In this document: positions 30,966 through 64,000 of the stretch, piece by piece
Numbering within the stretch: position 1 is the first letter of the stretch
Layout of the letters: each line of letters starts with the position of its first letter
Assembly (NCBI GenBank): GCA_002104905.1
Contig: MCFE01000212.1
Span: 62,001-126,000, forward strand
Reading direction: 5' to 3'
Source: Basidiobolus meristosporus CBS 931.73
Lineage: Eukaryota; Fungi; Basidiobolomycota
DNA length: 64,000 nt
Notes under the pieces: model-generated
Seen by the model: only the letters and a program-made list of their open reading frames with translations
The model's database searches: none
Told to the model about the DNA's origin: nothing
Made by a program: the position numbers and the translations under genes

Positions 30966-32693
30966 ATGACCAACAACATTCGTTCCTCTTTCGTCGCCCA
31001 GGGTACCGCCACCTCCGAGGCGGACCGCGACGCTTACAAGTTGCGTGGTTTGATGCCCGCCGTGGTCGAGACCTTGGAAAAACAAGCCACCCGTGCATTC
31101 GAACAGCTTCGCAACAAGACCAGCGACTTGGAGAAGTACATCTTCTTGGCTTGGTTGAGAAACACCAACACCCGTCTTTTCTACAAGCTGGTCATGGACT
31201 CCCCTGAGGAGATCATGCCCCTCATCTACACCCCCACCGTCGGTGCCGCCTGCGTCAATTACTCTCACATTTATCCATTCCTCGGCCCCAACGGCAACTT
31301 CGACGGGCTCTTCATATCCATCGACGATCTCCCCATCATCGATCAGATCATCGAGAACTACAAGAACTCCCTTCCCAGCTCCGAGATCTCCCCCGATATC
31401 GCTGTTGTCACCGACGGTTCCCGCATTCTTGGTCTTGGCGATCTTGGCGTGGGCGGCATGGGCATCCCCGTCGGCAAGCTTCAGCTCTACGTTGCTGCTG
31501 CCGGTATCGACCCCCGCAAGACCCTCCCCATCTGCCTCGACTTCGGAACCAACAACCAGAAGAACCTCGACGACCCCCTCTACATTGGTCTCCGCAGAAA
31601 CAGACCCGAGGACCCTGAGTTCTACCAAGCCGTGGACACCGTTCTTGCCTCTTTGAACAAGGCGTTCCCCAAGATGCTCATCCAGTTCGAGGATTTCTCC
31701 TCCGAGCACGCGTTCGAGCTCCTCGACCGCCACCGCGAGCGGTACCTTAGCTTCAACGACGATATCCAGGGCACCGGGGCCGTCATCCTTTCCGGCTTCA
31801 TCAACGCCGTCCGTGAAGTCGGTATCCCTGCCAAGCAGCACAAGCTTCTCTTCTTCGGAGCCGGATCCGCCGGTGTCGGAGTTGCCAAGCAGATCATGGA
31901 CTACTTCGTACTGGAGCACGGTATGACCGAGGATGAGGCCAAACGCCTTTTCTGGTTGAACGACTCCAAGGGCTTGGTCACCCTGGACCGTGGCGACAAG
32001 CTCGCCCAGCACAAGGTCTACTTCGCACGTGACGACAACGAGGGCAAGCAGTTCAAGGACCTCAAGGAGACCATCAAGCACGTTCGTCCTACCGCCTTGA
32101 TCGGCTTGAGCTCCCAAGGTGGCGTCTTCACCCCCGAGATCCTCGAACTTCTGGCTGAGATCAACGAACGCCCCATCGTGTTCCCCCTCTCCAACCCCGC
32201 CACCCAAGCCGAGTGCTCCTTCGAGCAAGCCATGATCCACACCAAGGGCAAGGTCCTCTTCGCCTCTGGCACCGCCTTCCCCCGCTACAAGGATGAGCAG
32301 GGAGTGGAGCACGTCCCAGGACAAGGCAACAACATGTACATCTTCCCGGGACTCGGACTCGGTGCCATCCTGGCCAGACCCTCCCGTATCACCGACACCA
32401 TCATCTACGCCTCTGCGGCCGCGTTGGCCGACTCCTTGACCGAGAACGAACGCAAGAGCCACCTGCTCTACCCTCGCATCGACCGCATCCGGGAGGTGTC
32501 CGCAGTGGTGGCGGCCGCAGTCTGCCGTCAAGCGGTCAAGGAGAACCTCGCCACCGAGCCAGAGATCCTCTCCATCCTTCCCGTCGGGGAGACAGCCGAG
32601 GTTGGAACCCCAGCCTGGGATGAGTTGATCAAGCACGTCGAGGGCAACATGTGGAAACCTGTTTACGAAACCGAGATTATCAGCAGAATGTAA
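30966..32693 (+). CDS. Malic enzyme, cytosolic-type (no presequence), 575 aa, intron-less
   Basis: Same catalytic motifs, with GAGSAG and NDSKGL. Lacks the N-terminal extension. Confidence 0.95.
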   Translation: MTNNIRSSFVAQGTATSEADRDAYKLRGLMPAVVETLEKQATRAFEQLRNKTSDLEKYIFLAWLRNTNTRLFYKLVMDSPEEIMPLIYTPTVGAACVNYSHIYPFLGPNGNFDGLFISIDDLPIIDQIIENYKNSLPSSEISPDIAVVTDGSRILGLGDLGVGGMGIPVGKLQLYVAAAGIDPRKTLPICLDFGTNNQKNLDDPLYIGLRRNRPEDPEFYQAVDTVLASLNKAFPKMLIQFEDFSSEHAFELLDRHRERYLSFNDDIQGTGAVILSGFINAVREVGIPAKQHKLLFFGAGSAGVGVAKQIMDYFVLEHGMTEDEAKRLFWLNDSKGLVTLDRGDKLAQHKVYFARDDNEGKQFKDLKETIKHVRPTALIGLSSQGGVFTPEILELLAEINERPIVFPLSNPATQAECSFEQAMIHTKGKVLFASGTAFPRYKDEQGVEHVPGQGNNMYIFPGLGLGAILARPSRITDTIIYASAAALADSLTENERKSHLLYPRIDRIREVSAVVAAAVCRQAVKENLATEPEILSILPVGETAEVGTPAWDELIKHVEGNMWKPVYETEIISRM

Positions 32694-40359: not shown

Positions 40360-40780
40360 CCAATGCAGAAGTTAACATTGAGTAAATTTTTGTGTGTTGG
40401 TGTAGTTTGAGTGACTCTAGATGAGGTTATTTTGTGATCACAAGAGCAAATCAGCAACAAACTATGTGTATTTCTTATTGCTAGCACTGGCTTAGATGTA
40501 AGTCCAATTGTTAATGAACACACTAATAACAAAATAAGCATAAGCATTACCTTAACATATAATGTAATGTACTATTGGTAATTTAGCAGGACAGAAGAGA
40601 GTACAGGCAGTGGCACATCACATGTGACTCTATTATTTAGGTTTGGTGAACTTTGTGTGACTGCTGCAAATATATCTTCAAAACATAATGTAACATAGAG
40701 CTCAAGAGCTATATTTGGTCAGATGAAATTTAATGATGTATTTCTATGTCCATCTATGGATGCATATATTTTCCTTGGTT
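40360..40780 (+). repeat. Decayed copy of tRNA-array spacer sequence
   Basis: 40360-40530 aligns with 53900-54060, and 40530-40780 aligns with 53590-53831. CpGs are converted. Confidence 0.85.
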
Positions 40781-45400: not shown

Positions 45401-45649
45401 TGCTTATAAGATTGGTTCATAGCTAGCAATATCACTGGTCATTGTGGAACAAGGAAAAGGTGGCTTGTGATAATTGTGTGCAACAATTTGAGATCAGACT
45501 GGATTGGGGGGTAGAGGTGAAGCAATTTGTTCATTTGCTGAACTGGTGGTGGACATTTATGTACTCTCATAGAAAGGCCATTGCCCATACCACCAGGTAT
45601 CATCAGACCCAGCCTTCAACTAAACCTATCATCCAAATAGCCAAAAAAA

Positions 45650-45721
45650 CTCTCAGACTGGGAATTGAACTCAGATCTCCTGTGTGACAGGCAGGGATAC
45701 TTACCACTATACTTTCTGAGA
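45650..45721 (-). pseudogene. tRNA-Asp(GTC) pseudogene with ~100 bp of array flank
   Basis: Same length as 48937-49008. All five CpGs are mutated to TpG or CpA, plus three other substitutions. Confidence 0.92.
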
Positions 45722-48567
45722 GGGGAATGACTGTTCACTCCTGTGCCTAGTCATTTAACTACATCTTTTATAGGCACTATCACACAGATTCAAGACAGGA
45801 TGAAACTAGGGGGATGCCACCCACTAAATCAAAGACAGGAAGGTTTACAATCCAAAACAGAAGAGGTAACAGAACACATGCAATGCTCCAAATGGAATAT
45901 GTTTGACTCCATAAGACTGAATGGAACAGAGGCTAGAATAAATCCAAAACATATATTTGACAATCCAAAAAAGACAGTAAAATTCAGATGCCAAGCATCA
46001 GTACCAGGAGCCAGAAACAAAAGGGAAATATGCAACTGTACATATAGCAAAAACACAATAATGCCAATCCTTAAAAAGTACAAAAAAAGAAAACATTGTT
46101 GGATATTAAAAATAAAAAACAAAGTAACAACTGGGATCAAGAGGAAGAGACAGTCCAGGAAACAGAAGGAACAGGGACCATTTCAGAAGAGACAGACCAC
46201 AAGTATAGTGGACCAACACAGATACAAGGAAACAACAAGAATATAAACTATAGGGAACCGTGGGAGGCAAGAGGGAAGACAGAGGAAAGGGAGTTGATGG
46301 TAACTCTGACAAAACTAAGCTGGCAGGGAGAGAAGGAGGGAAACAGACTGATAGAAAATGGGGAAAAGGAGATAACCAACAGAGAGAGGATGGAAAAAGA
46401 GCAACCAGTACAACAGAAAAGTCCCATCTGGTACACAACCCTAGAATGGAATGTAGAAGGAGAAGGGGAAGAGCAAAGGAACGAGGTCACTACCAAGGAA
46501 GGAACAAGGATGTGGGAAAGAATCAGGGAGATAGAAAAGCAAATGGGCAAGTTAGCAAAGGAACTAGAGGAGATAAAGAAAGGGATCAGTGAAGGAAACC
46601 CTATGAAGGGCGAAAATGATATAAAGAGGGGACACAGGAAGGATACAGAGGAATTCTCAACAAGAGCTGGAGAAGTTGAGACCACATCAATATACGCCAA
46701 AACACTCAAAAAAACGTCATCAACAAATATAATAAGAAAGACACCAGCAACAAGCATCCACCAGAATGGAAATCTGGGCAATCAACAGAAACTACAAAAC
46801 AGGCTGCGAGAGCTCAAGAAGACAAACAAAACCTCTCCAACTCAAAATCTAAACATGGAATTGTGCATGAACAAACATATAGAATGTAAAAAAAAATCGT
46901 TAAAGGAGGTAATGGAAATTTTCAACAGTACGGGTATCACTAAAGACATGATCGTGAACATGCACTACGTTGGAAGGAGTATACTGGAAATACTTATCCC
47001 CGTAGAACACATTCCGATAGTGGAAAAAACACTGGGGGAGGCGGATCTCAAGCTCAAGGACCCACCAAATCCTTGCATAACACAGGGAATGGGTGCAAGA
47101 TTCCAACACATGAATTCAGAGGAAAAAAGAGAGTGTGCCAGGGAGCTGGCACGAAACAGAATCAAACGACAGATTTTCTAGGACAACGTAGCTGGTAGAT
47201 GGTACTGGTGGTACGCAAAAACCTTAGGACTGGAAACGGGCAACCTTAAGAAATGCACAACAGAGAACCAAAGTAGACAACAAAACAAACAGGAGAATCG
47301 ATTGAATCAAAGATTGTAAAATAGTTTTTGCCAATCTGAACGGGGCAAGAAATAAGATGAGTGAAATTAACAATTTTTTGGACGTCCACAATGTCGACCT
47401 AGTTATGGTAAATCAAACGTGGTTGGTTCATTGTCCTAGGAGCTATTTCCAGGACAGACTAATACTACACAAAACGGCAAAAACACCAAAAAAAGAAGGA
47501 GATGGGGGACGACCAAACGGCGGAATGATAATCCTCAGAAAGAGCATATTAAAACAACCAATCTGTCAAATGGAGTATGACCATCCGGATCGCGACGAAG
47601 TAATAGTGCAAGTGGGAGACACAACAATATCGTTTAATTACCTCAAACCCACAGATAACGAGGAATTACTGAAGGAACGATTCACACACAACGGAAATAA
47701 CAAAAACCCGAATATATGGTTGGGTGATTTCAATGCAAGACTAGGAGAACTTGTCAACGATAGCAGAAGTAACAAAAAGGGGACGGCACTTAGAAAAATA
47801 ATGACACAATACACACTTAATAGAATACCACCGTCAAACGACAAACCAACATACACCTCAAAAACAGGACAAAGCACAATCGATATTGTGCTAGCGAACA
47901 GAACGGCTTCAAATAGAATAATACAATGCATAGTACTAGAGAACACGGCGTTTGGTATCTCCGACCACGCACCAATCCTAGTACACTTTAAATACATTGG
48001 GGGAGAAGACGAGGGGACAAGCATAATCAGACCTAGATGGCGTCCATGGAAAATACCATTACCAAAAGCACCAAACAAAAAAAAACACAAAACCGCAAGA
48101 GAAGGGGCCCACAACAGACAAAGAGAGAGAGAAAACAGGGGCACTGCAATATCTAAAAGCGTACACTGATAAGGCGGAAGAAGGGATGGAAGACTGGGAA
48201 CTAGGGAACAAGGCCACAACGGAGAAGGAGAGGCTAATGGAAAAATCAGTTGATATGCTGGTAACAGGATTGCAAAGAGCAACTGAAGTGTTCGGCACAA
48301 CCAAACCAAGAAAAACAAACTGGAAATGGTTCTGATCCAAACAACTAGAACATCTAAAGAATAGAAGAAGGGCAGCATATCGGAAGTGGAAAAGATGCAA
48401 GGAGAAAGAAGGCAAGATCCACTTATGGGAAGAGTTTGACGTTATGCAAAAACAATTCAGGATGGAATTGAACAAAGAGCGGAAGGCACGTTTCAGAGAC
48501 TTCAGCAACCAAATAGCAAAAGCAAACAACTCAGATATGAGCCGTTTACTAAAAAGACTAGCTAAAC
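45722..48567 (+). mobile_element. LINE (non-LTR) element: ORF1, APE endonuclease and linker, truncated before the RT
   Basis: ORF1 ~45743-47319 has a frameshift and a stop. ORF2 from 47312 reads KIVFANLNGARNK, NQTW, GGMII, WLGDFNAR, STIDIVL, SDHAPI. Frameshift at ~48080 and stop at ~48333. Confidence 0.88.
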
Positions 48568-48595
48568 TGATCCGACCTCCAATATGACTGTACAT

Positions 48596-48668
48596 GGGCG
48601 TATGGCCAAATGGATAAGGCGCCTGACTACGGATCAGGAGATTCCAGGTTCGATCCCTGGTATGCTCG
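48596..48668 (+). tRNA. tR(ACG): tRNA-Arg(ACG)
   Basis: Cloverleaf with anticodon arm CCTGA-CTACGGA-TCAGG, GTTCGATCC B box and a downstream T-run. Confidence 0.95.
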
Positions 48669-48936
48669 TACAACAATTTTTTATGTTCCATGTTACTCGG
48701 AATACTAATACTCAAACTTACTTTTGTAAGTTTCATGGCATGATAAGCTCTAGACATGATGGCTGCAATCAGTGCATATCCTCTGCAATACAATAGTTTA
48801 TTTGATTATTCACTCGATAGCATTGTGATGTCTACTAGCTGTTATGTTCTTTCATAAAAAGGCCATTGCCCACACCATCACGTATCATCAAACCCAACCT
48901 TCAATTAATCCCATCATCCAAATAGCCAAAAGAAAA

Positions 48937-49008
48937 CTCTCAGACCGGGAATTGAACCCGGGTCTCCCGCGTGACAGGCGGGGATACTTACCACTATACT
49001 ATCTGAGA
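48937..49008 (-). tRNA. tD(GTC): tRNA-Asp(GTC)
   Basis: Anticodon arm CCCGC-CTGTCAC-GCGGG. Confidence 0.95.
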
Positions 49009-49455
49009 AGATATCTATCAAGTGAAATATATAATTTATAACGCACACTATTTAATACTTGGTAAAGCATGTTAGGGAGGCTATCGGGCTGGCAAAAACA
49101 ATTTGAACAATTAGCCTACCTATGAAAATACATTTTCCCCTCTCCCACCCATCTATGATGTGTGTCAATTTCCCCCAGCTGCACAGTGTATATCTTCTGA
49201 CTCAGTAAAAACATACACACGATATTTACTACACAATAAAATGGGTATATTGCTGCAACGTTGTTGGCCCTTGATTGTACATTGATTAGATTGAATTCAA
49301 TAAAAATCACAATTTCTACTTTGAGCACTGATTGACAAATAAGCGCTAAAATGGATTTACTCATGAATAAAGTACCATACAAGTGACCATCCGACTTCCA
49401 TTCAACACCCTGCCCCCTACTCCAACTAAATACTGCACACAGAAAAAGGTAAAAA

Positions 49456-49529
49456 TGCTCACAGCAGGGGTCGAACCTGCGACCTTGGCGTTATTAGCAC
49501 CACGCTCTAACCAACTGAGCTATGCGAGC
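49456..49529 (-). tRNA. tI(AAT): tRNA-Ile(AAT)
   Basis: Anticodon arm TGGTG-CTAATAA-CGCCA. Confidence 0.95.
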
Positions 49530-49534
49530 ATATA

Positions 49535-49616
49535 CGACAACAGCAGGATTTGAACCTGCGCGGGCAGAGCCCATATGATTTCTAGTCATACGCCTTAACC
49601 ACTCGGCCATATTGTC
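49535..49616 (-). tRNA. tS(AGA): tRNA-Ser(AGA)
   Basis: Anticodon arm TATGA-CTAGAAA-TCATA and a long variable arm. Confidence 0.95.
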
Positions 49617-49721
49617 TGATATATCAATCCTTCTCTCTTTAAATATATGACTAAACATTTAACATTATCTTGTTTAATAAAGTATGTTGAAGCTATTGTT
49701 TTCTAAAAATCGCAGAAAATT

Positions 49722-49793
49722 AGGTCTCGCCGAGAATCGAACTCGGATTACAGGATTCAAAGTCCTGGGTGCTAACCATTACACCACGAAACC
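49722..49793 (-). tRNA. tQ(TTG): tRNA-Gln(TTG)
   Basis: Anticodon arm CAGGA-CTTTGAA-TCCTG. Confidence 0.95.
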
Positions 49794-49918
49794 AGCAACT
49801 ACCTGTTATAAGCTAATCTATATTATAGTACTTACTCACTCGTAATCTTGCATTAAATATTTATTTCTGTAGCCCGCCAATGAAGAATACAATGAAGGGG
49901 CTGTGAACCAAAAAGGAT

Positions 49919-50001
49919 TGGTAACAGTGAGATTCGAACTCACGCCTCTTACGAGACCGCAACTTGAGTGCGGCGCCTTAGACCAACTCGGCCATGTTAC
50001 C
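49919..50001 (-). tRNA. tL(CAA): tRNA-Leu(CAA)
   Basis: Anticodon arm CCGCA-CTCAAGT-TGCGG and a long variable arm. Confidence 0.95.
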
Positions 50002-50302
50002 GTATATTACATCCATCTCATATTTTTCTTACGACTAGAAAGGTTCGCAAACCTAGAGTGTTCATGTCACTCGATACTAATTTTTTTGTGATTAAAAGAA
50101 CTTCCAAATTCGTCAATTTTCAGTGGTCGTTAATTATTGCCAAATAGCTTGTAACAAAAGGAAACACAAAGCTACCAACGATGCCAGATTGTGCTTGTAT
50201 GAGAACACACGCTATCTAGTAATGCACTTTCAAAATGTGGTTCATTTGCACCTTGAATGCAAGTCTGTGGGCTGTACTGATCTGACAACCACTAAAATAA
50301 AA

Positions 50303-50373
50303 TGCCATTGCTCGGAATCGAACCGAGGTCGACGCGGCCACAACGCGATGTACTGCCACTATACTACAATGGC
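50303..50373 (-). tRNA. tH(GTG): tRNA-His(GTG)
   Basis: Anticodon loop TTGTGGC and acceptor stem GCCATTG/CAATGGC. Confidence 0.93.
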
Positions 50374-50554
50374 GAATTCAGTATTTGACCCATTACCTGA
50401 CTTCATGTTATGTTCACTGATCATACCTTGCGACTAGCTACCCATCTGCATTGGTAGGGTTCAATGTGAAGATGGGTACATGATACAGTGAGCATTCTGA
50501 ATGGAGTAAAGTCTTGTGGGAATATAGAATTTTGCTTGCTTTCTAACAATAACT

Positions 50555-50626
50555 TCCTCATTGGTCCAGTGGTTAGGATTTCTCGCTTTCACCGAGACGG
50601 CCGGGGTTCGATTCCCCGATGGGGAA
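50555..50626 (+). tRNA. tE(TTC): tRNA-Glu(TTC)
   Basis: Anticodon arm TCTCG-CTTTCAC-CGAGA. Confidence 0.95.
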
Positions 50627-50826
50627 ATACTTTTGTCCTATGTTTTTATTAGTGGTTGGGATGATATGCAGGAAAGCCGCAAGCTCAAGGGCCCCGTGTA
50701 GAGAATACCAAAATGATCAAGGCCATCCTTACGTGAAGCATACACACAAAAAGTGATCGATCTTTTTTCATATATGGGGACTGGCCAAGGTCCTACTGAT
50801 ACAACACCCACCAAAACAAAAATCAG

Positions 50827-50898
50827 TGAGGAGTGCGTGATTTGAACACGCAACCTTTCGCTCTGGAGGCGAACGCGCTACCGTTGCGCCAACCCCCC
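50827..50898 (-). tRNA. tW(CCA): tRNA-Trp(CCA)
   Basis: Anticodon arm TTCGC-CTCCAGA-GCGAA. Confidence 0.95.
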
Positions 50899-51042
50899 AC
50901 TTACATTTGTTACGTAGTTAACTACCTACATAAAACCCCATTTTACAACATGTACTCTCCCTCATAAGACTTGGTACTTCGTTGCAAATTTTAAAATTTT
51001 CTTGATGACCATATATAGCAAGTTGAGTTATCCATCAACGAA

Positions 51043-51116
51043 GTCTTCGTGGTGTAGTTGGTTATCACGTCTGTCTAACACACAGACGGTCCTCGGTTCG
51101 AATCCGAGCGAAGACA
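51043..51116 (+). tRNA. tV(AAC): tRNA-Val(AAC)
   Basis: Anticodon arm TCTGT-CTAACAC-ACAGA. Confidence 0.95.
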
Positions 51117-51333
51117 TCATTTTTCCCTCTGCTGCATAATCTTTTGCAAATACTTGCTCTTTGTGCCCTCCATGACACATCGCATTTACTCTATATCACT
51201 ACCTATGGAAGATACTATACTCACCCGCCCCGAATCTGTTCTTCCACCTGAACAAAGCAAAGGCCCCTCCTCTTCGCCGAAGCTCAAAGGTTTAGATGTC
51301 CAGCAGAGAGCAATAATACGGTATTCCCACACA

Positions 51334-51406
51334 GGGGGTCTAGCTCAGATGGTAGAGCGCTCGCTTAGCATGCGAGAGGCACTGGGATCGATACCCAGGT
51401 CCTCCA
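51334..51406 (+). tRNA. tA(AGC): tRNA-Ala(AGC)
   Basis: Anticodon arm CTCGC-TTAGCAT-GCGAG, G3:U70 identity pair and ATCGATA T-loop. Confidence 0.95.
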
Positions 51407-51627
51407 GTATCGATTATACGGTATTCGTTTTGCTTGGAATCTGTACTGCCAATACACCTTTGAAGAAGCAGCATGGAAGCGTACTGCAAACAGGTGTGAT
51501 ATCTATTTTAGATATTTCGCGTAAGAGCATCACTAGGACAAAGGCCTAAATGCTGCTTTCCTCTATTGTTCGGTGTGCATATTTCAATTCCAAAAGGTAT
51601 ATGGCTAAGAGGTGCAAAAAGTAAAAA

Positions 51628-51700
51628 CACCCAACGTGGGGGTCGAACCCACAACCTTGAGATTAAGAGTCTCACGCTCTACCGATTGAGCTAGCCGGGC
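51628..51700 (-). tRNA. tK(CTT): tRNA-Lys(CTT)
   Basis: Anticodon arm TGAGA-CTCTTAA-TCTCA. Confidence 0.95.
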
Positions 51701-51886
51701 ATGTTACACTTCAGTTACCGTGTGTTATGTTATAACATCGCAGATCCTGAGAAAGACAAAGTAGATGATCGAATACATCTCTAAAAAATGCAAGAGCCAG
51801 TATACTGCTATCACTACTGTCACTTGATAACTCGATGGGTTGCCTGTCTAATCCTATGATAACACGGATCAAAACTATCCTAAAAA

Positions 51887-51959
51887 TGCCGTCTCTGCGG
51901 ATTGAACGCAGGACCTTCAGAACTTCAGTCTGACGCTCTCCCAACTGAGCTAAGACGGC
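51887..51959 (-). tRNA. tF(GAA): tRNA-Phe(GAA)
   Basis: Anticodon arm TCAGA-CTGAAGT-TCTGA. Confidence 0.95.
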
Positions 51960-52381
51960 TAGTTGCTCTTACCATAGGGTAAGGACTTATCTGTCTCAAG
52001 CCTAAAATACATTTGAAACACGGGACGCGTGTGTAATCGACAGACCATAATGTATACATTGCAATATCAACACCTTGCTAGCACCATTATATCCAAGGCG
52101 CAAATCCTGTAACCTGAGGTTTACTCAAGCCGGTAGATCTGTCGAGTCACATTTGAGCAGATGAGCTTTCTAGCCGAAGCACAATAGAGTAGCAAAAACG
52201 GATTGCATTTAATATCTAGCAGATAGGATACATGACAACGCCAGCGCACTAGTTGATCTCAAACCCGTAGCCCGGATTTTTGATAAAGATGCTGGGAAAA
52301 TTACCGAGCCCGGCTGCTTCCATTGTGTGAATAAACGAGCCAAATGGATAATAGAGTATTGGCCTACTTCCGAACAGAAAT

Positions 52382-52464
52382 GGAGAGATGGCCGAGTTGG
52401 TCTAAGGCGTCACGTTAAGGCCGTGATCTCTTCGGAGGCGTGGGTTCGAATCCCACTCTCTTCA
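52382..52464 (+). tRNA. tL(AAG): tRNA-Leu(AAG)
   Basis: Anticodon arm TCACG-TTAAGGC-CGTGA and a long variable arm. Confidence 0.95.
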
Positions 52465-52637
52465 TTACTTTTTGCTCTCAACCAAATGGATACCATTTTA
52501 TAAACTTGCTTGTTGTATGTATGAGACCACTGGGAATTCACATAATCTCTCTAAAAAATCTTTTCATCGTAGTAACCAGCAATGAACCATGCCCAGAAAA
52601 GAATGTTACGCATAAACGATGCAATCGCAAAAAGATA

Positions 52638-52710
52638 TGCCTTCTGCCGGAATCGAACCAGCGACCTTCTGCTTACTAGGCAGACGCTCTGCCAACTGAG
52701 CCAAGGAGGC
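52638..52710 (-). tRNA. tT(AGT): tRNA-Thr(AGT)
   Basis: Anticodon arm TCTGC-CTAGTAA-GCAGA. Confidence 0.95.
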
Positions 52711-53415
52711 AATACATTTGGCATGGATGTCCTTTCCAACATCACTCTTTGTCTTTTGAGCAAGAGACAATCTTCAACTCTGAATATAACTGCTTTTCTT
52801 TGTAGTGGTCTTTCAGCTAGTAAATATGCTATTTCAATCTTCTACGCATTATGTTACCCATCTTCATATTGTACGTAGATGGACACAAAGTTCTATGTGT
52901 GCATACTGCTACGATACCATTTCTATTCTAGATAGCAGTGCATCGATGGTTAGGAAATCACTCTCGTTAATGCGTCTAGCTGTGACAACTAACCCATGGG
53001 TTCGAAGCTGGCATAAGCACTTTGTCAGCATAAGCAATGTGGCACATACCTGGGCCGTTATGAAAAAATTATCTATACTCAGTTTTGCAAAAGTTTGCGC
53101 GTGACCGAGTAAAAATGTTTATTCACTTTTATTAACCCTAAACTTGTTTGCCCAGGATGTGCTCAACGTTACCGAGAATTAAGTATTCATGAAGTTTTGA
53201 GATGCACACCCTACAATCCAGAGGCTAAAGGCATTCATCCCTGTGTCTAGATTTAGTGTTTACACATCTTCGAGGAGAAACACAATCCCTAGGGTTAGGG
53301 AGAAGATTGTGTACGGTGCAGAAGTGACCCTTGTCACAGTTGAGAGGAGAAGCAGAAAACAGAGATGCGGTTTTTTGAGTGAAAGCAGCCATAATTAGAC
53401 AAAATGCGAGCAAAA

Positions 53416-53486
53416 TGCATACTCGGGGAATCGAACCCCGGTCTACCGCGTGGCAGGCGGTAATTATACCACTAAACCAAGTATGC
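53416..53486 (-). tRNA. tG(GCC): tRNA-Gly(GCC)
   Basis: Anticodon arm ACCGC-CTGCCAC-GCGGT. Confidence 0.95.
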
Positions 53487-53839
53487 ACTTGATAAAGGGA
53501 GCAACGCAATAATCAGAGATGTAACGTAATAGATTTATTCCCAAGCCCCTTCTCCCCTTAAGATTGATCATCCCAGATGACCGGATCACTCTAATAACGA
53601 AATAAGTATAGGCATTACCTTACCACGTAATGTAATGTACCATTGGCAATTGAGCAAGACAGAAAAGAGTACAGGCAGTAGCGTATCACATGTGACTCTA
53701 TTGTGTAGCTACGGTGAGCTTTGCATGACTGCCGCAAATACACCTCCAAAGTATAACAACTATACTTGGCCGAATGAAATACAACAGTTCAGTTACATGT
53801 CCATCCATGGACGCATAAATCTTCCCTGGTTCAAGAATA

Positions 53840-53911
53840 TCCGCATTGGTCCAGTGGTCAGGATCTCTCGCTCTCACCGAGAAGGCCGGGGTTCGATTCC
53901 CCGATGCGGAA
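53840..53911 (+). tRNA. tE(CTC): tRNA-Glu(CTC)
   Basis: Anticodon arm TCTCG-CTCTCAC-CGAGA. Confidence 0.95.
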
Positions 53912-54083
53912 GTTCGCATTCAGTAACTTTTTGTAAGTTGGTGTAGTATGAGTGACTCGAGATGAAATTATTTTGTGATCACAAGAGAGGATCAGCGACA
54001 AACTATAGATCTTTCTTGTTGCTAGCACATGTTTAGATGTATGTACAATTGTTAATGATCCGACCTCCAATATGACTGTACAT

Positions 54084-54156
54084 GGGCGTATGGCCAAATG
54101 GATAAGGCGCCTGACTACGGATCAGGAGATTCCAGGTTCGATCCCTGGTATGCTCG
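54084..54156 (+). tRNA. tR(ACG): tRNA-Arg(ACG), unit 2
   Basis: Identical to 48596-48668. Confidence 0.95.
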
Positions 54157-54424
54157 TACAACAATTTTTTATGTTCCATGTTACTCGGAATACTAATACT
54201 CAAACTTACTTTTGTAAGTTTCATGGCATGATAAGCTCTAGACATGATGGCTGCAATCAGTGCATATCCTCTGCAATACAATAGTTTATTTGATTATTCA
54301 CTCGATAGCATTGTGATGTCTACTAGCTGTTATGTTCTTTCATAAAAAGGCCATTGCCCACACCATCACGTATCATCAAACCCAACCTTCAATTAATCCC
54401 ATCATCCAAATAGCCAAAAGAAAA

Positions 54425-54496
54425 CTCTCAGACCGGGAATTGAACCCGGGTCTCCCGCGTGACAGGCGGGGATACTTACCACTATACTATCTGAGA
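54425..54496 (-). tRNA. tD(GTC): tRNA-Asp(GTC), unit 2
   Basis: Identical to the unit 1 copy. Confidence 0.95.
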
Positions 54497-54943
54497 AGAT
54501 ATCTATCAAGTGAAATATATAATTTATAACGCACACTATTTAATACTTGGTAAAGCATGTTAGGGAGGCTATCGGGCTGGCAAAAACAATTTGAACAATT
54601 AGCCTACCTATGAAAATACATTTTCCCCTCTCCCACCCATCTATGATGTGTGTCAATTTCCCCCAGCTGCACAGTGTATATCTTCTGACTCAGTAAAAAC
54701 ATACACACGATATTTACTACACAATAAAATGGGTATATTGCTGCAACGTTGTTGGCCCTTGATTGTACATTGATTAGATTGAATTCAATAAAAATCACAA
54801 TTTCTACTTTGAGCACTGATTGACAAATAAGCGCTAAAATGGATTTACTCATGAATAAAGTACCATACAAGTGACCATCCGACTTCCATTCAACACCCTG
54901 CCCCCTACTCCAACTAAATACTGCACACAGAAAAAGGTAAAAA

Positions 54944-55017
54944 TGCTCACAGCAGGGGTCGAACCTGCGACCTTGGCGTTATTAGCACCACGCTCTAACC
55001 AACTGAGCTATGCGAGC
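54944..55017 (-). tRNA. tI(AAT): tRNA-Ile(AAT), unit 2
   Basis: Identical to the unit 1 copy. Confidence 0.95.
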
Positions 55018-55022
55018 ATATA

Positions 55023-55104
55023 CGACAACAGCAGGATTTGAACCTGCGCGGGCAGAGCCCATATGATTTCTAGTCATACGCCTTAACCACTCGGCCATAT
55101 TGTC
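55023..55104 (-). tRNA. tS(AGA): tRNA-Ser(AGA), unit 2
   Basis: Identical to the unit 1 copy. Confidence 0.95.
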
Positions 55105-55209
55105 TGATATATCAATCCTTCTCTCTTTAAATATATGACTAAACATTTAACATTATCTTGTTTAATAAAGTATGTTGAAGCTATTGTTTTCTAAAAATCG
55201 CAGAAAATT

Positions 55210-55281
55210 AGGTCTCGCCGAGAATCGAACTCGGATTACAGGATTCAAAGTCCTGGGTGCTAACCATTACACCACGAAACC
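55210..55281 (-). tRNA. tQ(TTG): tRNA-Gln(TTG), unit 2
   Basis: Identical to the unit 1 copy. Confidence 0.95.
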
Positions 55282-55406
55282 AGCAACTACCTGTTATAAG
55301 CTAATCTATATTATAGTACTTACTCACTCGTAATCTTGCATTAAATATTTATTTCTGTAGCCCGCCAATGAAGAATACAATGAAGGGGCTGTGAACCAAA
55401 AAGGAT

Positions 55407-55489
55407 TGGTAACAGTGAGATTCGAACTCACGCCTCTTACGAGACCGCAACTTGAGTGCGGCGCCTTAGACCAACTCGGCCATGTTACC
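55407..55489 (-). tRNA. tL(CAA): tRNA-Leu(CAA), unit 2
   Basis: Identical to the unit 1 copy. Confidence 0.95.
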
Positions 55490-55790
55490 GTATATTACAT
55501 CCATCTCATATTTTTCTTACGACTAGAAAGGTTCGCAAACCTAGAGTGTTCATGTCACTCGATACTAATTTTTTTGTGATTAAAAGAACTTCCAAATTCG
55601 TCAATTTTCAGTGGTCGTTAATTATTGCCAAATAGCTTGTAACAAAAGGAAACACAAAGCTACCAACGATGCCAGATTGTGCTTGTATGAGAACACACGC
55701 TATCTAGTAATGCACTTTCAAAATGTGGTTCATTTGCACCTTGAATGCAAGTCTGTGGGCTGTACTGATCTGACAACCACTAAAATAAAA

Positions 55791-55861
55791 TGCCATTGCT
55801 CGGAATCGAACCGAGGTCGACGCGGCCACAACGCGATGTACTGCCACTATACTACAATGGC
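55791..55861 (-). tRNA. tH(GTG): tRNA-His(GTG), unit 2
   Basis: Identical to the unit 1 copy. Confidence 0.93.
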
Positions 55862-56042
55862 GAATTCAGTATTTGACCCATTACCTGACTTCATGTTATG
55901 TTCACTGATCATACCTTGCGACTAGCTACCCATCTGCATTGGTAGGGTTCAATGTGAAGATGGGTACATGATACAGTGAGCATTCTGAATGGAGTAAAGT
56001 CTTGTGGGAATATAGAATTTTGCTTGCTTTCTAACAATAACT

Positions 56043-56114
56043 TCCTCATTGGTCCAGTGGTTAGGATTTCTCGCTTTCACCGAGACGGCCGGGGTTCGAT
56101 TCCCCGATGGGGAA
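56043..56114 (+). tRNA. tE(TTC): tRNA-Glu(TTC), unit 2
   Basis: Identical to the unit 1 copy. Confidence 0.95.
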
Positions 56115-56314
56115 ATACTTTTGTCCTATGTTTTTATTAGTGGTTGGGATGATATGCAGGAAAGCCGCAAGCTCAAGGGCCCCGTGTAGAGAATACCAAA
56201 ATGATCAAGGCCATCCTTACGTGAAGCATACACACAAAAAGTGATCGATCTTTTTTCATATATGGGGACTGGCCAAGGTCCTACTGATACAACACCCACC
56301 AAAACAAAAATCAG

Positions 56315-56386
56315 TGAGGAGTGCGTGATTTGAACACGCAACCTTTCGCTCTGGAGGCGAACGCGCTACCGTTGCGCCAACCCCCC
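56315..56386 (-). tRNA. tW(CCA): tRNA-Trp(CCA), unit 2
   Basis: Identical to the unit 1 copy. Confidence 0.95.
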
Positions 56387-56530
56387 ACTTACATTTGTTA
56401 CGTAGTTAACTACCTACATAAAACCCCATTTTACAACATGTACTCTCCCTCATAAGACTTGGTACTTCGTTGCAAATTTTAAAATTTTCTTGATGACCAT
56501 ATATAGCAAGTTGAGTTATCCATCAACGAA

Positions 56531-56604
56531 GTCTTCGTGGTGTAGTTGGTTATCACGTCTGTCTAACACACAGACGGTCCTCGGTTCGAATCCGAGCGAA
56601 GACA
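56531..56604 (+). tRNA. tV(AAC): tRNA-Val(AAC), unit 2
   Basis: Identical to the unit 1 copy. Confidence 0.95.
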
Positions 56605-56815
56605 TCATTTTTCCCTCTGCTGCATAATCTTTTGCAAATACTTGCTCTTTGTGCCCTCCATAACACATCGCATTTACTCTATATCACTACCTATGGAAGA
56701 TACTATACTCACCCGCCCCGAATCTGTTCTTCCACCTGAACAAAGCAAAGGCCCCTCCTCTTCGCCGAAGCTCAAAGGTTTAGATGTCCAGCAGAGAGCA
56801 ATAATACGGTATTCC

Positions 56816-57125
56816 TGTTATGATTTAAATCCTAACTAGTCACTACCGATCACTTGAACACTACTGATCGAACACCTGGAATTCCACACAGACGATCAAT
56901 CGCACTCAGTGATACACACGTTATTTAATACATCTTGAACCCTCCTTTTGGAAGCTTGCCCTACGTTATCGGAAGCTCTCCCTCCGAGGCTATCTCTATA
57001 TAAACTCCTTTGAACACTATCAATAAAGCATCAACCTTTTACCGGTTCATCAACTATTCAGATAACCTCTCTGATTCGTATTGGACATCCTCCGGTCCTC
57101 CTCCGCTTGCCCTCGATTCATAACA
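56816..57125 (+). repeat. 5' LTR
   Basis: TGTTATGA...TCATAACA termini. Appears identical to 61885-62194. Confidence 0.97.
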
Positions 57126-57126
57126 T

Positions 57127-57137
57127 TGGTAGCAGCG
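57127..57137 (+). promoter_or_regulatory. Primer-binding site TGGTAGCAGCG, probably for tRNA-iMet
   Basis: Lies just after the LTR. Its complement CGCTGCTACCA resembles the iMet 3' end, and no array tRNA matches it. Confidence 0.65.
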
Positions 57138-57170
57138 AACCTCCGATCTCCAAAAAACAAAAACCTCCGT

Positions 57171-57360
57171 ACCTCCCAGAAACTTTTCCAATCTCTCAGA
57201 AACTCTTCCGATCTCCCAGAAACTTTTCCAATCTCTCAGAAACTCTTCCGATCTCCCAGAAACTTTTCCAATCTCTCAGAAACTCTTCCGATCTCCCAGA
57301 AACTCTTCCGATCTCCCAGAAACTCTTCCGATCTCCCAGATATTCTTCCAATTGTCCAGA
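57171..57360 (+). repeat. 20-bp tandem repeat with 40-bp higher-order alternation in the gypsy 5' UTR
   Basis: Alternating CTCCCAGAAACTTTTCCAAT and CTCTCAGAAACTCTTCCGAT, about 9 monomers. Confidence 0.9.
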
Positions 57361-57523
57361 GATACCCTCCGTACCTGCCCGAGACCCTCCCAACCTCCCA
57401 GAGAAACCCTCCGTTTCACTCAAAAAAAAGAAAAAAAACAGTACCCAGTCAATTCTGCCAGAGAACCAGCCCCCTTGGTAAACACACCCGCCTACCGCAA
57501 ATCAAACAATACCCAAAAACAAA

Positions 57524-60500
57524 ATGAGTGAAGAAAAGCCAAAATTTAGCTCTTCAGAAGAAATGTTGGCCTATATTGAGAGTCTTGAACAACAAGTTGC
57601 TGAGTTAGCCGGTCAAGGACAGTCCCACACAACTGAGCCTGCGGCCCTCCCTAGTCTGGACCCAAGAATGGGTAGGCAGACAGACTTGGACTCTTTACAT
57701 TTTGTGAACACCCAGAGATCATGGTTTACTGGTCAAGGTATACAGAGAGAGGGTGAAGCCTCATCTGTAAGACCTGCGGTGCCTCCCAATTCCTTGAATC
57801 TTGGAGAAGATGGGCAAGGCTCTCTGGACTTCACAAAACAATATAGAGCAACAAATCTGAAACTTCAGAAACCCAACATCTTTGAAGGCAAAAGACACAC
57901 TGCCACTCTAGAGACTTGGATATTTGAAGTAGAGCAGTACCTATACTTCTCAGATGACTCTGAAGAAGTCAAAGTACATTATGCCTGTTCACTTTTCAGA
58001 AAGGAAGCAACCATGTGGTGGAAACTTCACATTCAAGGAATGAATAGGGGCATCTTTCCACCCATAGCCTCCTGGGCTGACTTTGTTAAAGCATTGAGAA
58101 AGAGGTTTACACCTATCAATGCTGATAGAATGGCAAGAGAAAAACTGTCCAAACTCTTTCAAGCCAAGTCTGTTCAAGAGTACAATGAGCAGTTTAACTT
58201 GCTTAGTATGGAAATTCAAAACATGCCTGATACTGAACTACTTGAGCAATACCTAAGAGGCCTGAAATCCAACACTAGATGGGAAATTGAATACAAAGAC
58301 CCCAAAACCCTAGTAGAGGCTATGGAACTGGCAGAAAGATATGATGCCATACACTTCAGAAGGGCTGTCAACCACAGAATTGGTCACTCAAGAACTACTA
58401 CAGGCCTCAAAGCCAATAACCACATACCTATTGGTAGTCAACCAATCACTGAACAAGGTGCACACTACCCCCACACACTGGAGCCTATGGACCTAGATGT
58501 TATGCAGAGCACACCAAGACCTTCTAAAGAGGAATGCTTCAAGCTTGGACTATGCTTTTACTGCAAGGAACAGGGTCATAAAGTCAATGAATGCCCAAAG
58601 AGGCCATTACAAAGAGTATTCCAACTCTCCACTAAGGAGGAGGAGCACACAATCAGCCTTGTTAAGGAGTATCAGAGGACTCAGAGCTTATATACTACCC
58701 CAAAGATGCTGAAACTCCCAGGGATTCTCAACAACAACCAATGTGTCTCTGTACTCATTGACAGTGGAGCAACTGATGTCTACATTTCAAAAGATGTAGC
58801 TGATCAGATGAAGCTACAAACAATCCCTTGCCCCCCAATTCACATCCTCTGTGCCACCAAGGAATCAATTATAGTGAACAGCAGGACTGAACCCTTGACT
58901 TTACAAATCAGGGACTTCCAAGACACCATTTCCCCAATTATCATACCCCAAGCCAACTTTGAAATCAATGTGGGACAAACTTGGCTAAGAAAGCACAATC
59001 CTGACATAAACTGGCAGACTCAGGAAGTTGTAATCAACAAGGATGATGCAAAATATCATCTGTCACCCAAACCAACCCTGGACAAAGGCAATGCACCAGA
59101 ACACACCATATCAAAGAAACAGTTTGCCCACTCTATCAGACAGAATCCCAAACTGTTGCACATGATAGCCTTTGCCAAAATCCAAGAGACCACAGAAGTG
59201 ACAAATGACAGGCTCAAGACCTTGTTAGCAGAGTTTCAAGAGGTTTTTCCCAAGGAAATCCCTGCACTACCCCCAAGCAGAGAGATTGACCATGCCATAG
59301 AAGTAACAGATGATAAACCAAGAAACAGAGCCCCATATAAGTTCTCCCCAAAGGAAATGGAGACTTTGAAGGAAACATTGAAGGACTACCTGGCTAAAGG
59401 CTGGATAAAACCCAGTAAATCACCATGGGGAGCTCCAGTACTCTTTGCTCCAAAGAAGGATGGGAAGCTACGGTTCTGTGTGGACTACAGGGCCCTAAAT
59501 GCAATCACTGTCAGAAATTCCTACCCATTACCAAGAATTGATGCCCTCTTTGACCAACTGGGGAAGGCAAAGATATTCTCTAAAATAGACCTGGCATCTG
59601 GATATCACCAAATCAGAATTAAGCCTGAAGACACCTCTAAGACAGCATTCAACACAAGATATGGTCATTATGAGTTTGTTGTGATGAGCTTTGGCCTGAC
59701 TAATGCCCCAGCAACATTTCAGACACTCATGAATAGCATCCTGGAACCATATTTAGAGAAATTTGTCCTGGTCTACTTAGATGACATTCTGATCTATAGT
59801 ACCAGCATGGATGACCACATGAAGCACTTGAAGACAGTACTGGCTATACTAAAAAAGCACAAGCTATATGCACAACTTCCTAAGTGTGAATTCCTCACCA
59901 GATCAGTTGAATACCTTGGTCACATAATCTCAGATAAAGGACTACACATGGATCCAGCCAAGATAGATGCTATCCAGAAATGGGAAGCCCCAAAGTCACT
60001 CACTGAAATGAGATCCTTCCTGGGACTTGCATCATATTACAGAAGATTCATCAGGGACTTTGCAACTATTGCAGCCCCCCTTACAGACTTGACCAAAAAA
60101 GAGAAAGACTATATATGGACCCCAAACTGTGAGACAGCTTTCCTAACTCTGAAAGAAAAGCTATGCCAAACCCCTGTGCTTCAGTTGCCTGATTTCTCAG
60201 AACCTTTCTGTGTATACACTGATGCTTCAGATCTAGCTGTTGGAGGGGTACTGACTCAAAAAGAACACCCGGTTGCTTATGAGTCCAAAAAGCTATCAGT
60301 AACTGAACAAAACTACCCAGTCCATGAAAAAGAACTCTATGCCATACTACATTGTCTGAGAGTGTGGAGATGCTACTTGGAGGGCAAACACTTTGTGGTA
60401 TATACAGATCATGCATCCCTAAGATACATTCACACCCAGAAGCTATTATCCAGAAGAATAACTAGATGGATTGAAGAACTACAACAATTTGATTTTAAAA

Positions 60501-61873
60501 TCCACTACCTCCCTGGGCCAAAGAATACAGTTGCTGATGCACTCTCAAGGCAACATATATCAATGGTAGATCATGAGTTGGACTGGCCAGAATACATGCC
60601 AGAGTACTTGGCAAGTCAGACAATGCCAGAAGATTTATCACAGGAAGTAAGGGTCAAGATTAAGAAAGAAGCAGAGAATTTCTCATATGGTGAAGACGAG
60701 GTACTTTACAGACACATGGAAGAAATAGGGCCTGTACCATATATTCCATTTGTATACAGAGGTGACATGATAATCAAGAATCATAAAGCCTTTGGACATC
60801 TGGGCATCCAAGGAACTTATGAAATAACTAAAAGGAGAGCCTGGTGGCCTAAACTCAAACAATTTATAGCTGAGACCCTCAAGACCTGCCCTGAGTGCCA
60901 GCTGGCTAGACCATACAACAAGGAACATGCCCCATTAGAACCACTGACTCCAGTTCCAGCATTCTACAGATGGGGAATTGACTTCATTGGAATATTGCCT
61001 GAAACTTCAAGAGGGAACAAGTGGATCATAACTGCAATTGACCATACCACTAAGTGGTGTATAGCAAAAGCCATGCCAGCAGCTACTGCAAAAAATGTTG
61101 CAAAATTCCTTTACCTGGAAATCTTTATGCAGTTTGGATGCCCAGGTGAAATTCTGTCTGACAGAGGAGCAAACTTTTTGGAACAAACCTTGAAAGAATA
61201 CCTTCAGATAATGGGGGTTAGACATTTGAAGACATCAGCATACCACCCTAGAACAAATGGGGTCACAGAGAGGTTCAATGGACTCTTTGGGAAGATGCTG
61301 ACTACTTATGTCAAAGGAGCCAAACATAAGTGGGATGAATTTGTACATCAAGCACTCTTTGCCTGTCGTATTAGAGTCCATTCAGCAACACAAAAGTCCC
61401 CCTTCTACCTAGTGTATGGTACACATCCAAGAATCCCAGGTGATACCTTACCACCATACATCTGGGACTTAAAGAACCAAAAAGACTTGGCAGAATTCAG
61501 AACAAGGGAACTGGAAGAATTAGGACATGCAAGACATGATGCCATCAAGAATTTAAAACGACAAGCAGAGAAGATGAAAGAACAGTACAACAAAACAGTG
61601 GTAACAAAACCCTTAACTTTGGGAAAACTTGTATTAGTCCGAAATGAAAGTAGGCTAAAACTAGAACCACATTGGGTTGGACCCTTTATTATCACAAGAG
61701 AAATGCCCTTCAATACATTTCAACTCGCAGACATGTCAGGTAAAGTAAAGGAGGACCTAGTGCATAGAGACCGACTAAAGGAAGCACAGCTAAAAAACCC
61801 AATGACACCACCAACCAAATACTGGTATTACAAGTCCGACAGACAGGACTCTTCAGGAGAAGAACCTCTTTAA
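57524..61873 (+). CDS. Ty3/gypsy Gag-Pol polyprotein, 1449 aa, uninterrupted
   Basis: Retrotrans_gag region, [63 protein letters not shown], and a GPF motif. Confidence 0.97.
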
Positions 61874-61884
61874 GTGTGGGAGTA

Positions 61885-62194
61885 TGTTATGATTTAAATC
61901 CTAACTAGTCACTACCGATCACTTGAACACTACTGATCGAACACCTGGAATTCCACACAGACGATCAATCGCACTCAGTGATACACACGTTATTTAATAC
62001 ATCTTGAACCCTCCTTTTGGAAGCTTGCCCTACGTTATCGGAAGCTCTCCCTCCGAGGCTATCTCTATATAAACTCCTTTGAACACTATCAATAAAGCAT
62101 CAACCTTTTACCGGTTCATCAACTATTCAGATAACCTCTCTGATTCGTATTGGACATCCTCCGGTCCTCCTCCGCTTGCCCTCGATTCATAACA
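61885..62194 (+). repeat. 3' LTR
   Basis: Matches the 5' LTR. Confidence 0.97.
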
Positions 62195-62306: not shown

Positions 62307-62766
62307 TGAATCTATCATAACAGCAACTTCTCGCTGTTTAACACAGAGAGCGAAAATTAGGGGGGTTATGGAGAATATTCTTATCAGCATAAATTAAGAT
62401 TTTTTGCGCGTTCTCAAATAAAATAGCTTCCTTTTATATTTAACCCTAAATGCATAAAAAAATATACAAACACTGCGCCGTAAAAGTAAATTCCATATTG
62501 ATTGACTACACGAAACGACATGTCGTAATAGTCAGGAGCCATACCGCACTGCTAGAGATCGAGGTGAACTCAACTCAAAGCAGCCATGAAAAACTAGTGA
62601 TATTTATGCTTGTGTTTGGGTTAGGGGTTAGGGTTGGGGCTGATTGTAAATACCTCTTAGGTCGCCATCTCCTCCCCCAAAAGTGAGGACTAGGATGAGA
62701 GCTGGTAACACTTCAGGTGGGATTGATGGCCAAAAAGAAATAGCAGCCAGGTTAATGGGCTAGGGA

Positions 62767-62835
62767 GGGAAGAGGGAAGAGGGAAGAGGGAAGAGGGAAG
62801 AGGGAAGAGGGAAGAGGGAAGAGGGAAGAGGGAAG
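62767..62835 (+). repeat. (GGGAAGA)n polypurine repeat, about 10 units
   Basis: Direct reading of the sequence. Confidence 0.9.
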
Positions 62836-63696: not shown

Positions 63697-63767
63697 TGCG
63701 TTAACTGGGAGTCGAACCCAGGCCAACTGCTTGGAAGGCAGTTATTCTACCGCTATACTATTAACGC
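63697..63767 (-). tRNA. tG(TCC): tRNA-Gly(TCC)
   Basis: Anticodon arm ACTGC-CTTCCAA-GCAGT and acceptor stem GCGTTAA/TTAACGC. Confidence 0.92.
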
Positions 63768-63864
63768 TTCCTACGTGTGGATGATTGAGTGTAGCGACTT
63801 GATATTATCATTAGGCAGCGTGATAAAGTCTTGATTCAAGCAAAAATAAGAGTGTATGCGTGCG

Positions 63865-63935
63865 CGCGTTAACTGGGAGTCGAACACAGGCCAACTGCTT
63901 GGAAGGCAGTTAATCTACCGCTATACTATTAACGC
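63865..63935 (-). tRNA. tG(TCC): tRNA-Gly(TCC) duplicate, possibly a pseudogene
   Basis: Copy at +168 bp with a T-stem mismatch, a D-stem change and a G discriminator. Confidence 0.7.
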
Positions 63936-64000
63936 TTCTTAAACATGAATATTTGAGTATAGTGATTTCGCATTATCATTAGGCAACGTGTTGAGGCCCT

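Follow-up and report, generated by a model that had tools for sequence, protein, structure and literature searches.

A tandem repeat unit of 17 different tRNA genes in the fungus Basidiobolus meristosporus, probably part of a multi-copy nuclear array

Why some eukaryotes place their transfer RNA (tRNA) genes in arrays like those of ribosomal DNA (rDNA) is an open question. The tRNA gene (tDNA) repeat of Xenopus laevis is 3.18 kb long, carries 8 tRNA genes and is present in a few hundred copies, and the human repeat at 1q23.3 has five tRNA genes per unit. Entamoeba has 25 types of array unit with 1-5 tRNA genes each, some of them with 5S, amounting to over 10% of the genome; one unit of six genes, [SPPPCK], is named in E. 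ecuadoriensis, and what the array form serves for continues to be described as obscure (PMC2652664). A study of human 1q23.3 describes a 7.3-kb unit with several tRNA genes and a variable copy number (PMC4041453). Arrays of mono- to trimeric units are found in Phytophthora infestans, and such arrays are infrequent in fungi (PMC9584435); those of Arabidopsis are formed by Ser-Tyr-Tyr triplets (PMC2886086). In a survey of 74 eukaryotes, tRNA clusters arose independently many times (PMC2888827). Here we describe a 5,488-bp unit of 17 different tRNA genes, followed head-to-tail by a partial second copy, in the fungus Basidiobolus meristosporus CBS 931.73. It lies in a stretch of 64,000 nucleotides (nt), hereafter the window, which corresponds to positions 62,001-126,000 of contig MCFE01000212.1 (127,292 bp; assembly GCA_002104905.1). 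The genome regions read were this window and two 22-kb loci.

The arrangement originally noted at 48568-56815 of the window, which is about 110.6-118.8 kb of the contig and 8.5 kb from its end, was confirmed by self-BLAST and by base-by-base comparison. As predicted, the first 2.76 kb of the unit recur head-to-tail with one single-nucleotide difference: 48568-51327 and 54056-56815 match over 2,760 bp, spacers included, and the identity breaks off sharply at either end. The window holds one head-to-tail junction (54055/54056) and 1.5 units in all, the second half of the unit (51328-54055) being present only once. Unit 2 ends at 56815 because the long terminal repeat (LTR) of a Ty3/gypsy retrotransposon begins at 56816, and unit 1 begins 27 bp upstream of tRNA-Arg with a truncated element resembling a long interspersed nuclear element (LINE) on its left. 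Of the original description as an rDNA-like tandem array, the head-to-tail repetition stands; the window itself shows no long array but 1.5 units with transposon-associated edges. Spacers between the tRNA genes range from 4 to 703 bp. No tandem repeat was found by TRF within 48568-56815, no other Rfam family at E<=0.5 and no other non-coding RNA genes were found in the unit spacers, and these spacers showed no similarity to the remainder of the window apart from the diverged relics described below.

Genes for tRNAs were called with ARAGORN and with Rfam model RF00005 (gathering score 29). ARAGORN placed 30 in the window, 17 in unit 1 (48595-53911) and 10 in unit 2 (54083-56604). The ten genes of unit 2 (Arg-ACG, Asp-GTC, Ile-AAT, Ser-AGA, Gln-TTG, Leu-CAA, His-GTG, Glu-TTC, Trp-CCA and Val-AAC) keep the order and orientation of the first ten in unit 1. 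For unit 1 both methods returned the same 17 genes (Table 1), which, like the ten of unit 2, scored 53-66 bits each against the gathering score. In agreement with the original prediction, none has an intron, every anticodon differs and both strands are used, six genes lying on the plus strand and 11 on the minus strand. The 17 anticodons serve 15 amino acids; Asn, Cys, Met, Pro and Tyr, already reported missing, are absent from the unit. This density amounts to 17 genes in 5.5 kb, or one gene for roughly every 320 bp. If 17 anticodons are drawn from 41-49 classes, the probability that none comes up twice is about 0.02-0.04, and duplicating single genes locally would not yield such an anticodon composition. 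A pericentromeric tRNA cluster of fission yeast was also considered as an identity for the locus and was rejected, the organism being Basidiobolus meristosporus.

Table 1. Features of the tRNA gene repeat and its surroundings (window positions).
Feature	Coordinates	Strand	Evidence	Remarks
Relic	40360-40780	+		about 420 bp; 75-83% identical
Relic of tRNA-Asp(GTC) and downstream spacer	45557-45722	-		87% identical to 48842-49008; 49.8 bits
LINE-like element	45743-48567	+		3'-truncated; ends exactly at unit 1 start
Unit 1	48568-54055			complete cassette, 5,488 bp; 17 tRNA genes, tRNA 23% of bases
tRNA-Arg(ACG)	48596-48668	+	ARAGORN, Rfam	
tRNA-Asp(GTC)	48937-49008	-	ARAGORN, Rfam	
tRNA-Ile(AAT)	49456-49529	-	ARAGORN, Rfam	second in probable dimeric Ser-Ile gene
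tRNA-Ser(AGA)	49535-49616	-	ARAGORN, Rfam	first in probable dimeric Ser-Ile gene
tRNA-Gln(TTG)	49722-49793	-	ARAGORN, Rfam	
tRNA-Leu(CAA)	49919-50001	-	ARAGORN, Rfam	intron-less
tRNA-His(GTG)	50303-50373	-	ARAGORN, Rfam	C at position -1
tRNA-Glu(TTC)	50555-50626	+	ARAGORN, Rfam	
tRNA-Trp(CCA)	50827-50898	-	ARAGORN, Rfam	
tRNA-Val(AAC)	51043-51116	+	ARAGORN, Rfam	
tRNA-Ala(AGC)	51334-51406	+	ARAGORN, Rfam	
tRNA-Lys(CTT)	51628-51700	-	ARAGORN, Rfam	
tRNA-Phe(GAA)	51887-51959	-	ARAGORN, Rfam	
tRNA-Leu(AAG)	52382-52464	+	ARAGORN, Rfam	
tRNA-Thr(AGT)	52638-52710	-	ARAGORN, Rfam	
tRNA-Gly(GCC)	53416-53486	-	ARAGORN, Rfam	
tRNA-Glu(CTC)	53840-53911	+	ARAGORN, Rfam, self-BLAST	92% identical to tRNA-Glu(TTC)
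Unit 2	54056-56815			first 2,760 bp only, 10 tRNA genes; 99.96% identical to 48568-51327
Sole mismatch between copies	51174 / 56662			G in unit 1, A in unit 2; Val-Ala spacer
Ty3/gypsy LTR retrotransposon	56816-62194	+	self-BLAST, Pfam	truncates unit 2

Seven of the anticodons begin with A34 (ACG, AAT, AGA, AAC, AGC, AAG and AGT), which is the eukaryotic inosine strategy. No gene of the unit encodes CCA, and tRNA-His lacks an encoded G-1. Nearly every gene had been said to possess its own T-run, and 16 of the 17 do have four or more consecutive T no further than 23 nt downstream, the exception being Ser-AGA. Since A34 anticodons, the absence of encoded CCA and of G-1 on tRNA-His, and T-run terminators occur together, the genes are, judged by their sequences, of eukaryotic nuclear type. 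Basidiobolus is a genus known for horizontal transfer (PMC7466969); a bacterial or horizontally acquired tRNA array was considered and is ruled out by the A34 anticodons and the lack of encoded CCA or G-1. The gene without a T-run is separated by about 5 bp (four by ARAGORN coordinates, five by those of Rfam) from tRNA-Ile(AAT) on the same strand, and in both copies of the pair, at 49456-49616 and 54944-55104, a T-run follows directly after Ile and none follows Ser. The Ser-Ile pair is thus probably a dimeric, dicistronic gene that RNA polymerase III (Pol III) would co-transcribe. Dimeric tRNA genes are known from yeasts, as Ser-Met in S. pombe and Arg-Asp in S. cerevisiae; the pair resembles these in its gap of about 5 bp and in a first gene devoid of a terminator, and differs from them in its partners. 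A TATA sequence was also seen at -29 to -34 of six of the 17 genes, where 2.4 are expected (P about 0.02), a weak hint that the unit may resemble fission yeast and plants in having TATA-like elements upstream as part of its Pol III promoters.

The decoding capacity of the set was examined on four Basidiobolus malic-enzyme genes (2,314 codons, a small sample from one family). For all 15 amino acids covered, the 17 tRNAs read the commonest codon in these genes, the top Gln codon, CAG, being read only through U34 wobble. With standard wobble the set covers about 69% of all codons in the sample. Because it reads the top codons of 15 amino acids, the unit is a set of major decoders (seven A34/inosine species, with G34 and C34 species), and the earlier statement that it covers mostly common I34/G34/C34 isoacceptors is borne out. 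The same earlier account called the unit a dosage-balanced kit. Equal gene dosage per unit is found, but one gene of each kind means equality and not a match to demand, so that a dosage fitted to codon use did not emerge and the kit as such is something we infer.

Copy number was approached by sampling 31-mers of the unit and asking what share of them is held by four sequencing runs (X1-X4) of one sample. The large runs X1 and X2, with 106-114 million letters of contigs, hold 0.78-0.79 of the unit 31-mers, and the small runs X3 and X4, with only 1-2 million letters of contigs, still hold 0.73 and 0.70. A 4.7-kb single-copy malic-enzyme locus served as control; it is held at 0.85 by X1 and X2, and X3 and X4 are not named among its holders in a listing that was not cut short. 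The genome measures about 89 Mb (10.1101/2025.03.31.646025). Since 1-2 Mb of contigs can represent only the most abundant sequences when the genome is that large, these values indicate, indirectly, that the unit is multi-copy relative to the malic-enzyme locus. The two copies in the window differ at one of 2,760 positions, whereas the older relics in the window are only 75-87% identical. As far as sequence can tell, near-identical copies beside diverged relics agree with concerted evolution of the block, as originally proposed, or with recent unequal exchange. Taken together, these data make it fairly probable that 48568-56815 is a 1.5-unit fragment of a multi-copy nuclear tandem tDNA repeat in B. 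meristosporus CBS 931.73.

Several observations weigh against this conclusion. The copy number was derived indirectly, from shares of 31-mers; the argument based on X3 and X4, runs of unspecified library type that share their sample with the assembly, is qualitative. Just 1.5 units lie in the window, and each outer edge of the repeat is a rearrangement. A second strain that bears the same species name holds about 12% of the unit words and 2% of the malic-enzyme locus. The former share is close to that expected from the tRNA genes alone (an estimated 0.14 or so), which confines the near-identical spacers to strain CBS 931.73. Exact-protein look-ups and metagenome scans retrieved no further copy of the unit: none of the four ATG open reading frames (ORFs) inside it had an exact match on record in the look-ups, and neither the unit junction nor the junction of the Ser-Ile dimer was matched in two metagenome scans.

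Both borders of the repeat are formed by transposable elements. Ty3 of S. cerevisiae and TRE and DGLT-A of Dictyostelium are retroelements targeted to tRNA genes. The young gypsy element at the right border has 310-bp LTRs that are 100% identical and end in TG...CA (5' LTR at 56816-57125), and its intact gag-pol ORF at 57524-61873 (1,449 aa) contains Ty3 capsid, protease, reverse transcriptase, RNase H and integrase domains by Pfam. The 5' LTR sits 6 bp upstream of the position at which tRNA-Ala would start in unit 2. The element thus combines gag-pol, LTRs and an insertion a few bp from a Pol III start, as Ty3-like tRNA-targeted elements do. Its flanking 5-mers differ (ATTCC and ATGCG), so that there is no target-site duplication (TSD), and the DNA that follows the 3' LTR does not correspond to the missing part of the unit. 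Because the flanks differ and the unit does not resume after the 3' LTR, the element joins two different insertion sites; it could be a recombinant of two insertions or reflect a jump by the assembler across a 5.4-kb identical repeat. A protein homology search with gag-pol found no relative closer than 34% identity, which means that this gypsy family is absent from the protein collection searched, and no exact match to it is on record.

Close by, some 10 bp separate the right end of the gypsy element from a tRNA-like relic (GGCCAAATGGTTAAG), tandem repeats of 20/40 bp occur just inside the 5' LTR of the element at 57173-57414, and a perfect (GAGGGAA)x10 microsatellite is found to the right of the element at 62765-62835. 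The LINE-like element at the left border contains a 361-aa ORF1 without a Pfam match, followed by an ORF with an endonuclease domain at 47357-48169 that has no exact match on record; the part encoding reverse transcriptase is missing. It starts directly beside the 5' end of the tRNA-Asp relic, is cut off where unit 1 starts, and may belong to a lineage of tRNA-associated LINEs.

The relic at 40360-40780 bears on how the unit is put together. In it, a homologue of the last 155 bp of the unit runs straight into a homologue of 53584-53831, without the 5.0-kb block that bears 16 of the 17 tRNA genes. That the unit start recurs as a breakpoint is a hint that the 16-tRNA block may be a discrete cassette. 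Either a microhomology deletion that fell on the same spot produced the relic, or the block is a separate cassette able to insert elsewhere.

A mobile origin of this kind can be extended to the whole locus: the block (48568 to about 53587), as the cargo of a transposon or something similar, would have landed in a small tRNA-Glu(CTC) repeat, and the tandem copies would be secondary. The relic joins the left and right flanks of the block directly, and this join lies no more than 3 bp away from the boundary between the LINE and unit 1, a match in phase with a probability of about 0.1% by chance; the block ends in TGATCCG...CGGATCA, a 7-bp inverted repeat, with the 3-bp GAT at both junctions. An inverted repeat of only 7 bp is short, though, and three of its bases may be a palindromic target; there is no clear TSD, the unit contains no transposase, and the relic is accounted for just as well if microhomology at GAT mediated a deletion from an array. 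We therefore consider a mobile cassette an unlikely source of the tandem arrangement.

The transposons at the edges invite another explanation, namely a one-off, local and partial segmental duplication, 2.76 kb in length, of a dense but essentially single-copy tRNA cluster in the course of transposon-driven rearrangement, with no long array and no concerted evolution. Such an event would suit a locus of 1.5 copies between a truncated LINE and a gypsy element without TSD, with transposon debris throughout the surrounding 40 kb. It is nevertheless improbable, because 70-73% of the unit is held by runs of 1-2 Mb that are not listed for the single-copy locus, and because a head-to-tail junction free of filler is the product of unequal exchange in an array. 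The position in repeat-rich DNA 8.5 kb from a contig end, in a hybrid PacBio/Illumina assembly, could also point to an artefact in which the partial second copy arose from mis-joined reads or haplotypes, and a gypsy element without TSD could have come about when the assembler passed from one to the other of two identical 5.4-kb copies. The copies differ by one base, however, and have different right neighbours, tRNA-Ala in unit 1 and the LTR in unit 2; assemblers usually collapse tandem repeats rather than expand them; and small, independent runs from the sample contain the unit as a multi-copy sequence. An artefact is accordingly very unlikely, and a fragment of a multi-copy tandem tDNA repeat is the explanation that we favour.

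For such a repeat we infer, from the sequence, long arrays, a mechanism of homogenisation, expression of the tRNAs and a benefit of dosage. Each gene of the unit would be a Pol III transcription unit of its own, with an oligo-T terminator and the internal A/B-box promoters that a canonical tRNA fold implies, and the Ser-Ile pair would yield a common transcript. Amplification of the block would raise the gene dosage of all major decoders together, while unequal sister-chromatid exchange or gene conversion would keep copies and spacers near-identical and expand the arrays. The gypsy and LINE elements, if they target tRNA genes, would insert into the array, and recombination between insertions would truncate, delete or relocate parts of it and leave diverged relics behind. 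A broader proposal seems to us evenly poised between true and false: that a large share of the nuclear tRNA genes of Basidiobolus lies in homogenised tandem arrays with 7-17 different tRNA genes, some with 5S, as an independent Entamoeba-like organisation that would include by far the richest unit known, tRNA-targeting gypsy and LINE lineages of its own, and at least one 16-tRNA block that is possibly insertable.

Elsewhere in the window, a 168-bp direct repeat at 63697-63990, whose copies are 86% identical, contains two tRNA-Gly(TCC) genes, the second of which scores lower. At 1.3-1.6 kb from the contig end, this pair may be the start of another tRNA array. No telomere repeats were found in the window. 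Dense transposon debris occupies 1-25000, including several dispersed repeats of 75-88% identity, a Harbinger-type DDE transposase ORF at 2029-2796 and a copia-type integrase/reverse transcriptase ORF at 13142-14866. A head-to-head pair of malic-enzyme genes at 27951-32693 forms an island of 56-60% GC with inverted segments that are 89% identical. A second head-to-head pair lies on MCFE01000215.1, a contig of nearly equal size, and its protein is 81-82% identical. The closest named relatives of the malic enzymes in the window are paralogues from B. meristosporus CBS 931.73 (81-82%) and the enzyme of B. ranarum (82%). The malic-enzyme regions of the two contigs look like a duplicated, perhaps homeologous, region; no tRNA genes were found within 10 kb of the paralogous malic genes on MCFE01000215.1.

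A culturable fungus with arrays of a near-full unit of major decoders would offer a second independent system beside Entamoeba, in which it can be asked whether tRNA genes are arrayed for dosage, for Pol III co-regulation or for chromatin and nuclear organisation, and how retroelements directed at Pol III genes and such arrays exist side by side. Since assemblies collapse or break arrays of this type, tRNA gene counts for the Basidiobolus genome are likely to be wrong. The retroelements have their own counterparts: a gypsy insertion a few bp upstream of the start of a tRNA gene, and a LINE next to tRNA genes, recall Ty3 of S. cerevisiae and TRE and DGLT-A of Dictyostelium, with the difference that in Basidiobolus the targets are clustered in arrays, so that insertions together with recombination would remodel the array itself.

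Among described arrays, the X. laevis repeat is likewise a multi-isotype cassette on both strands, amplified as a tandem block; it has half as many genes per unit, its host is an animal, and the number of its copies was measured directly. That known units hold far fewer isotypes was part of the original account; for Entamoeba the statement is supported by published counts (up to 5, PMC2652664). The Xenopus and human repeats have 8 and 5 genes. The human 1q23.3 repeat shares a kb-scale unit of several tRNA genes whose copy number varies by unequal exchange; it has fewer tRNA genes and is a GC-rich, CTCF-binding unit proposed as a boundary element (PMC4041453). Amplification by unequal crossing-over and near-identical copies within an array are also seen in P. 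infestans and Arabidopsis, where units are monomeric, dimeric or trimeric and 0.5-1.5 kb long (PMC9584435, PMC2886086). Entamoeba comes close in having units of several different tRNA genes arranged head-to-tail with near-identical spacers (Clark et al. 2006; Tawari et al. 2008, PMC2652664), but in an amoebozoan and with one to five genes per unit, once six, against 17 here; its spacers in E. histolytica are full of short tandem repeats, of which the Basidiobolus unit has none. Intact nuclear-type tRNA genes and head-to-tail near-identity that extends through the spacers, visible here over 1.5 units, are what the Entamoeba and Xenopus arrays have in common with this locus. Literature searches on tRNA genes in Basidiobolus and on tRNA arrays of fungi, subscription journals not included, turned up no earlier account of such a unit in a fungus. 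The Basidiobolus repeat is a real tandem tDNA cassette of the Entamoeba and Xenopus kind with an unusually rich unit: its mechanism and logic are familiar, and what is new is its occurrence in a fungus and how many different genes each unit carries.

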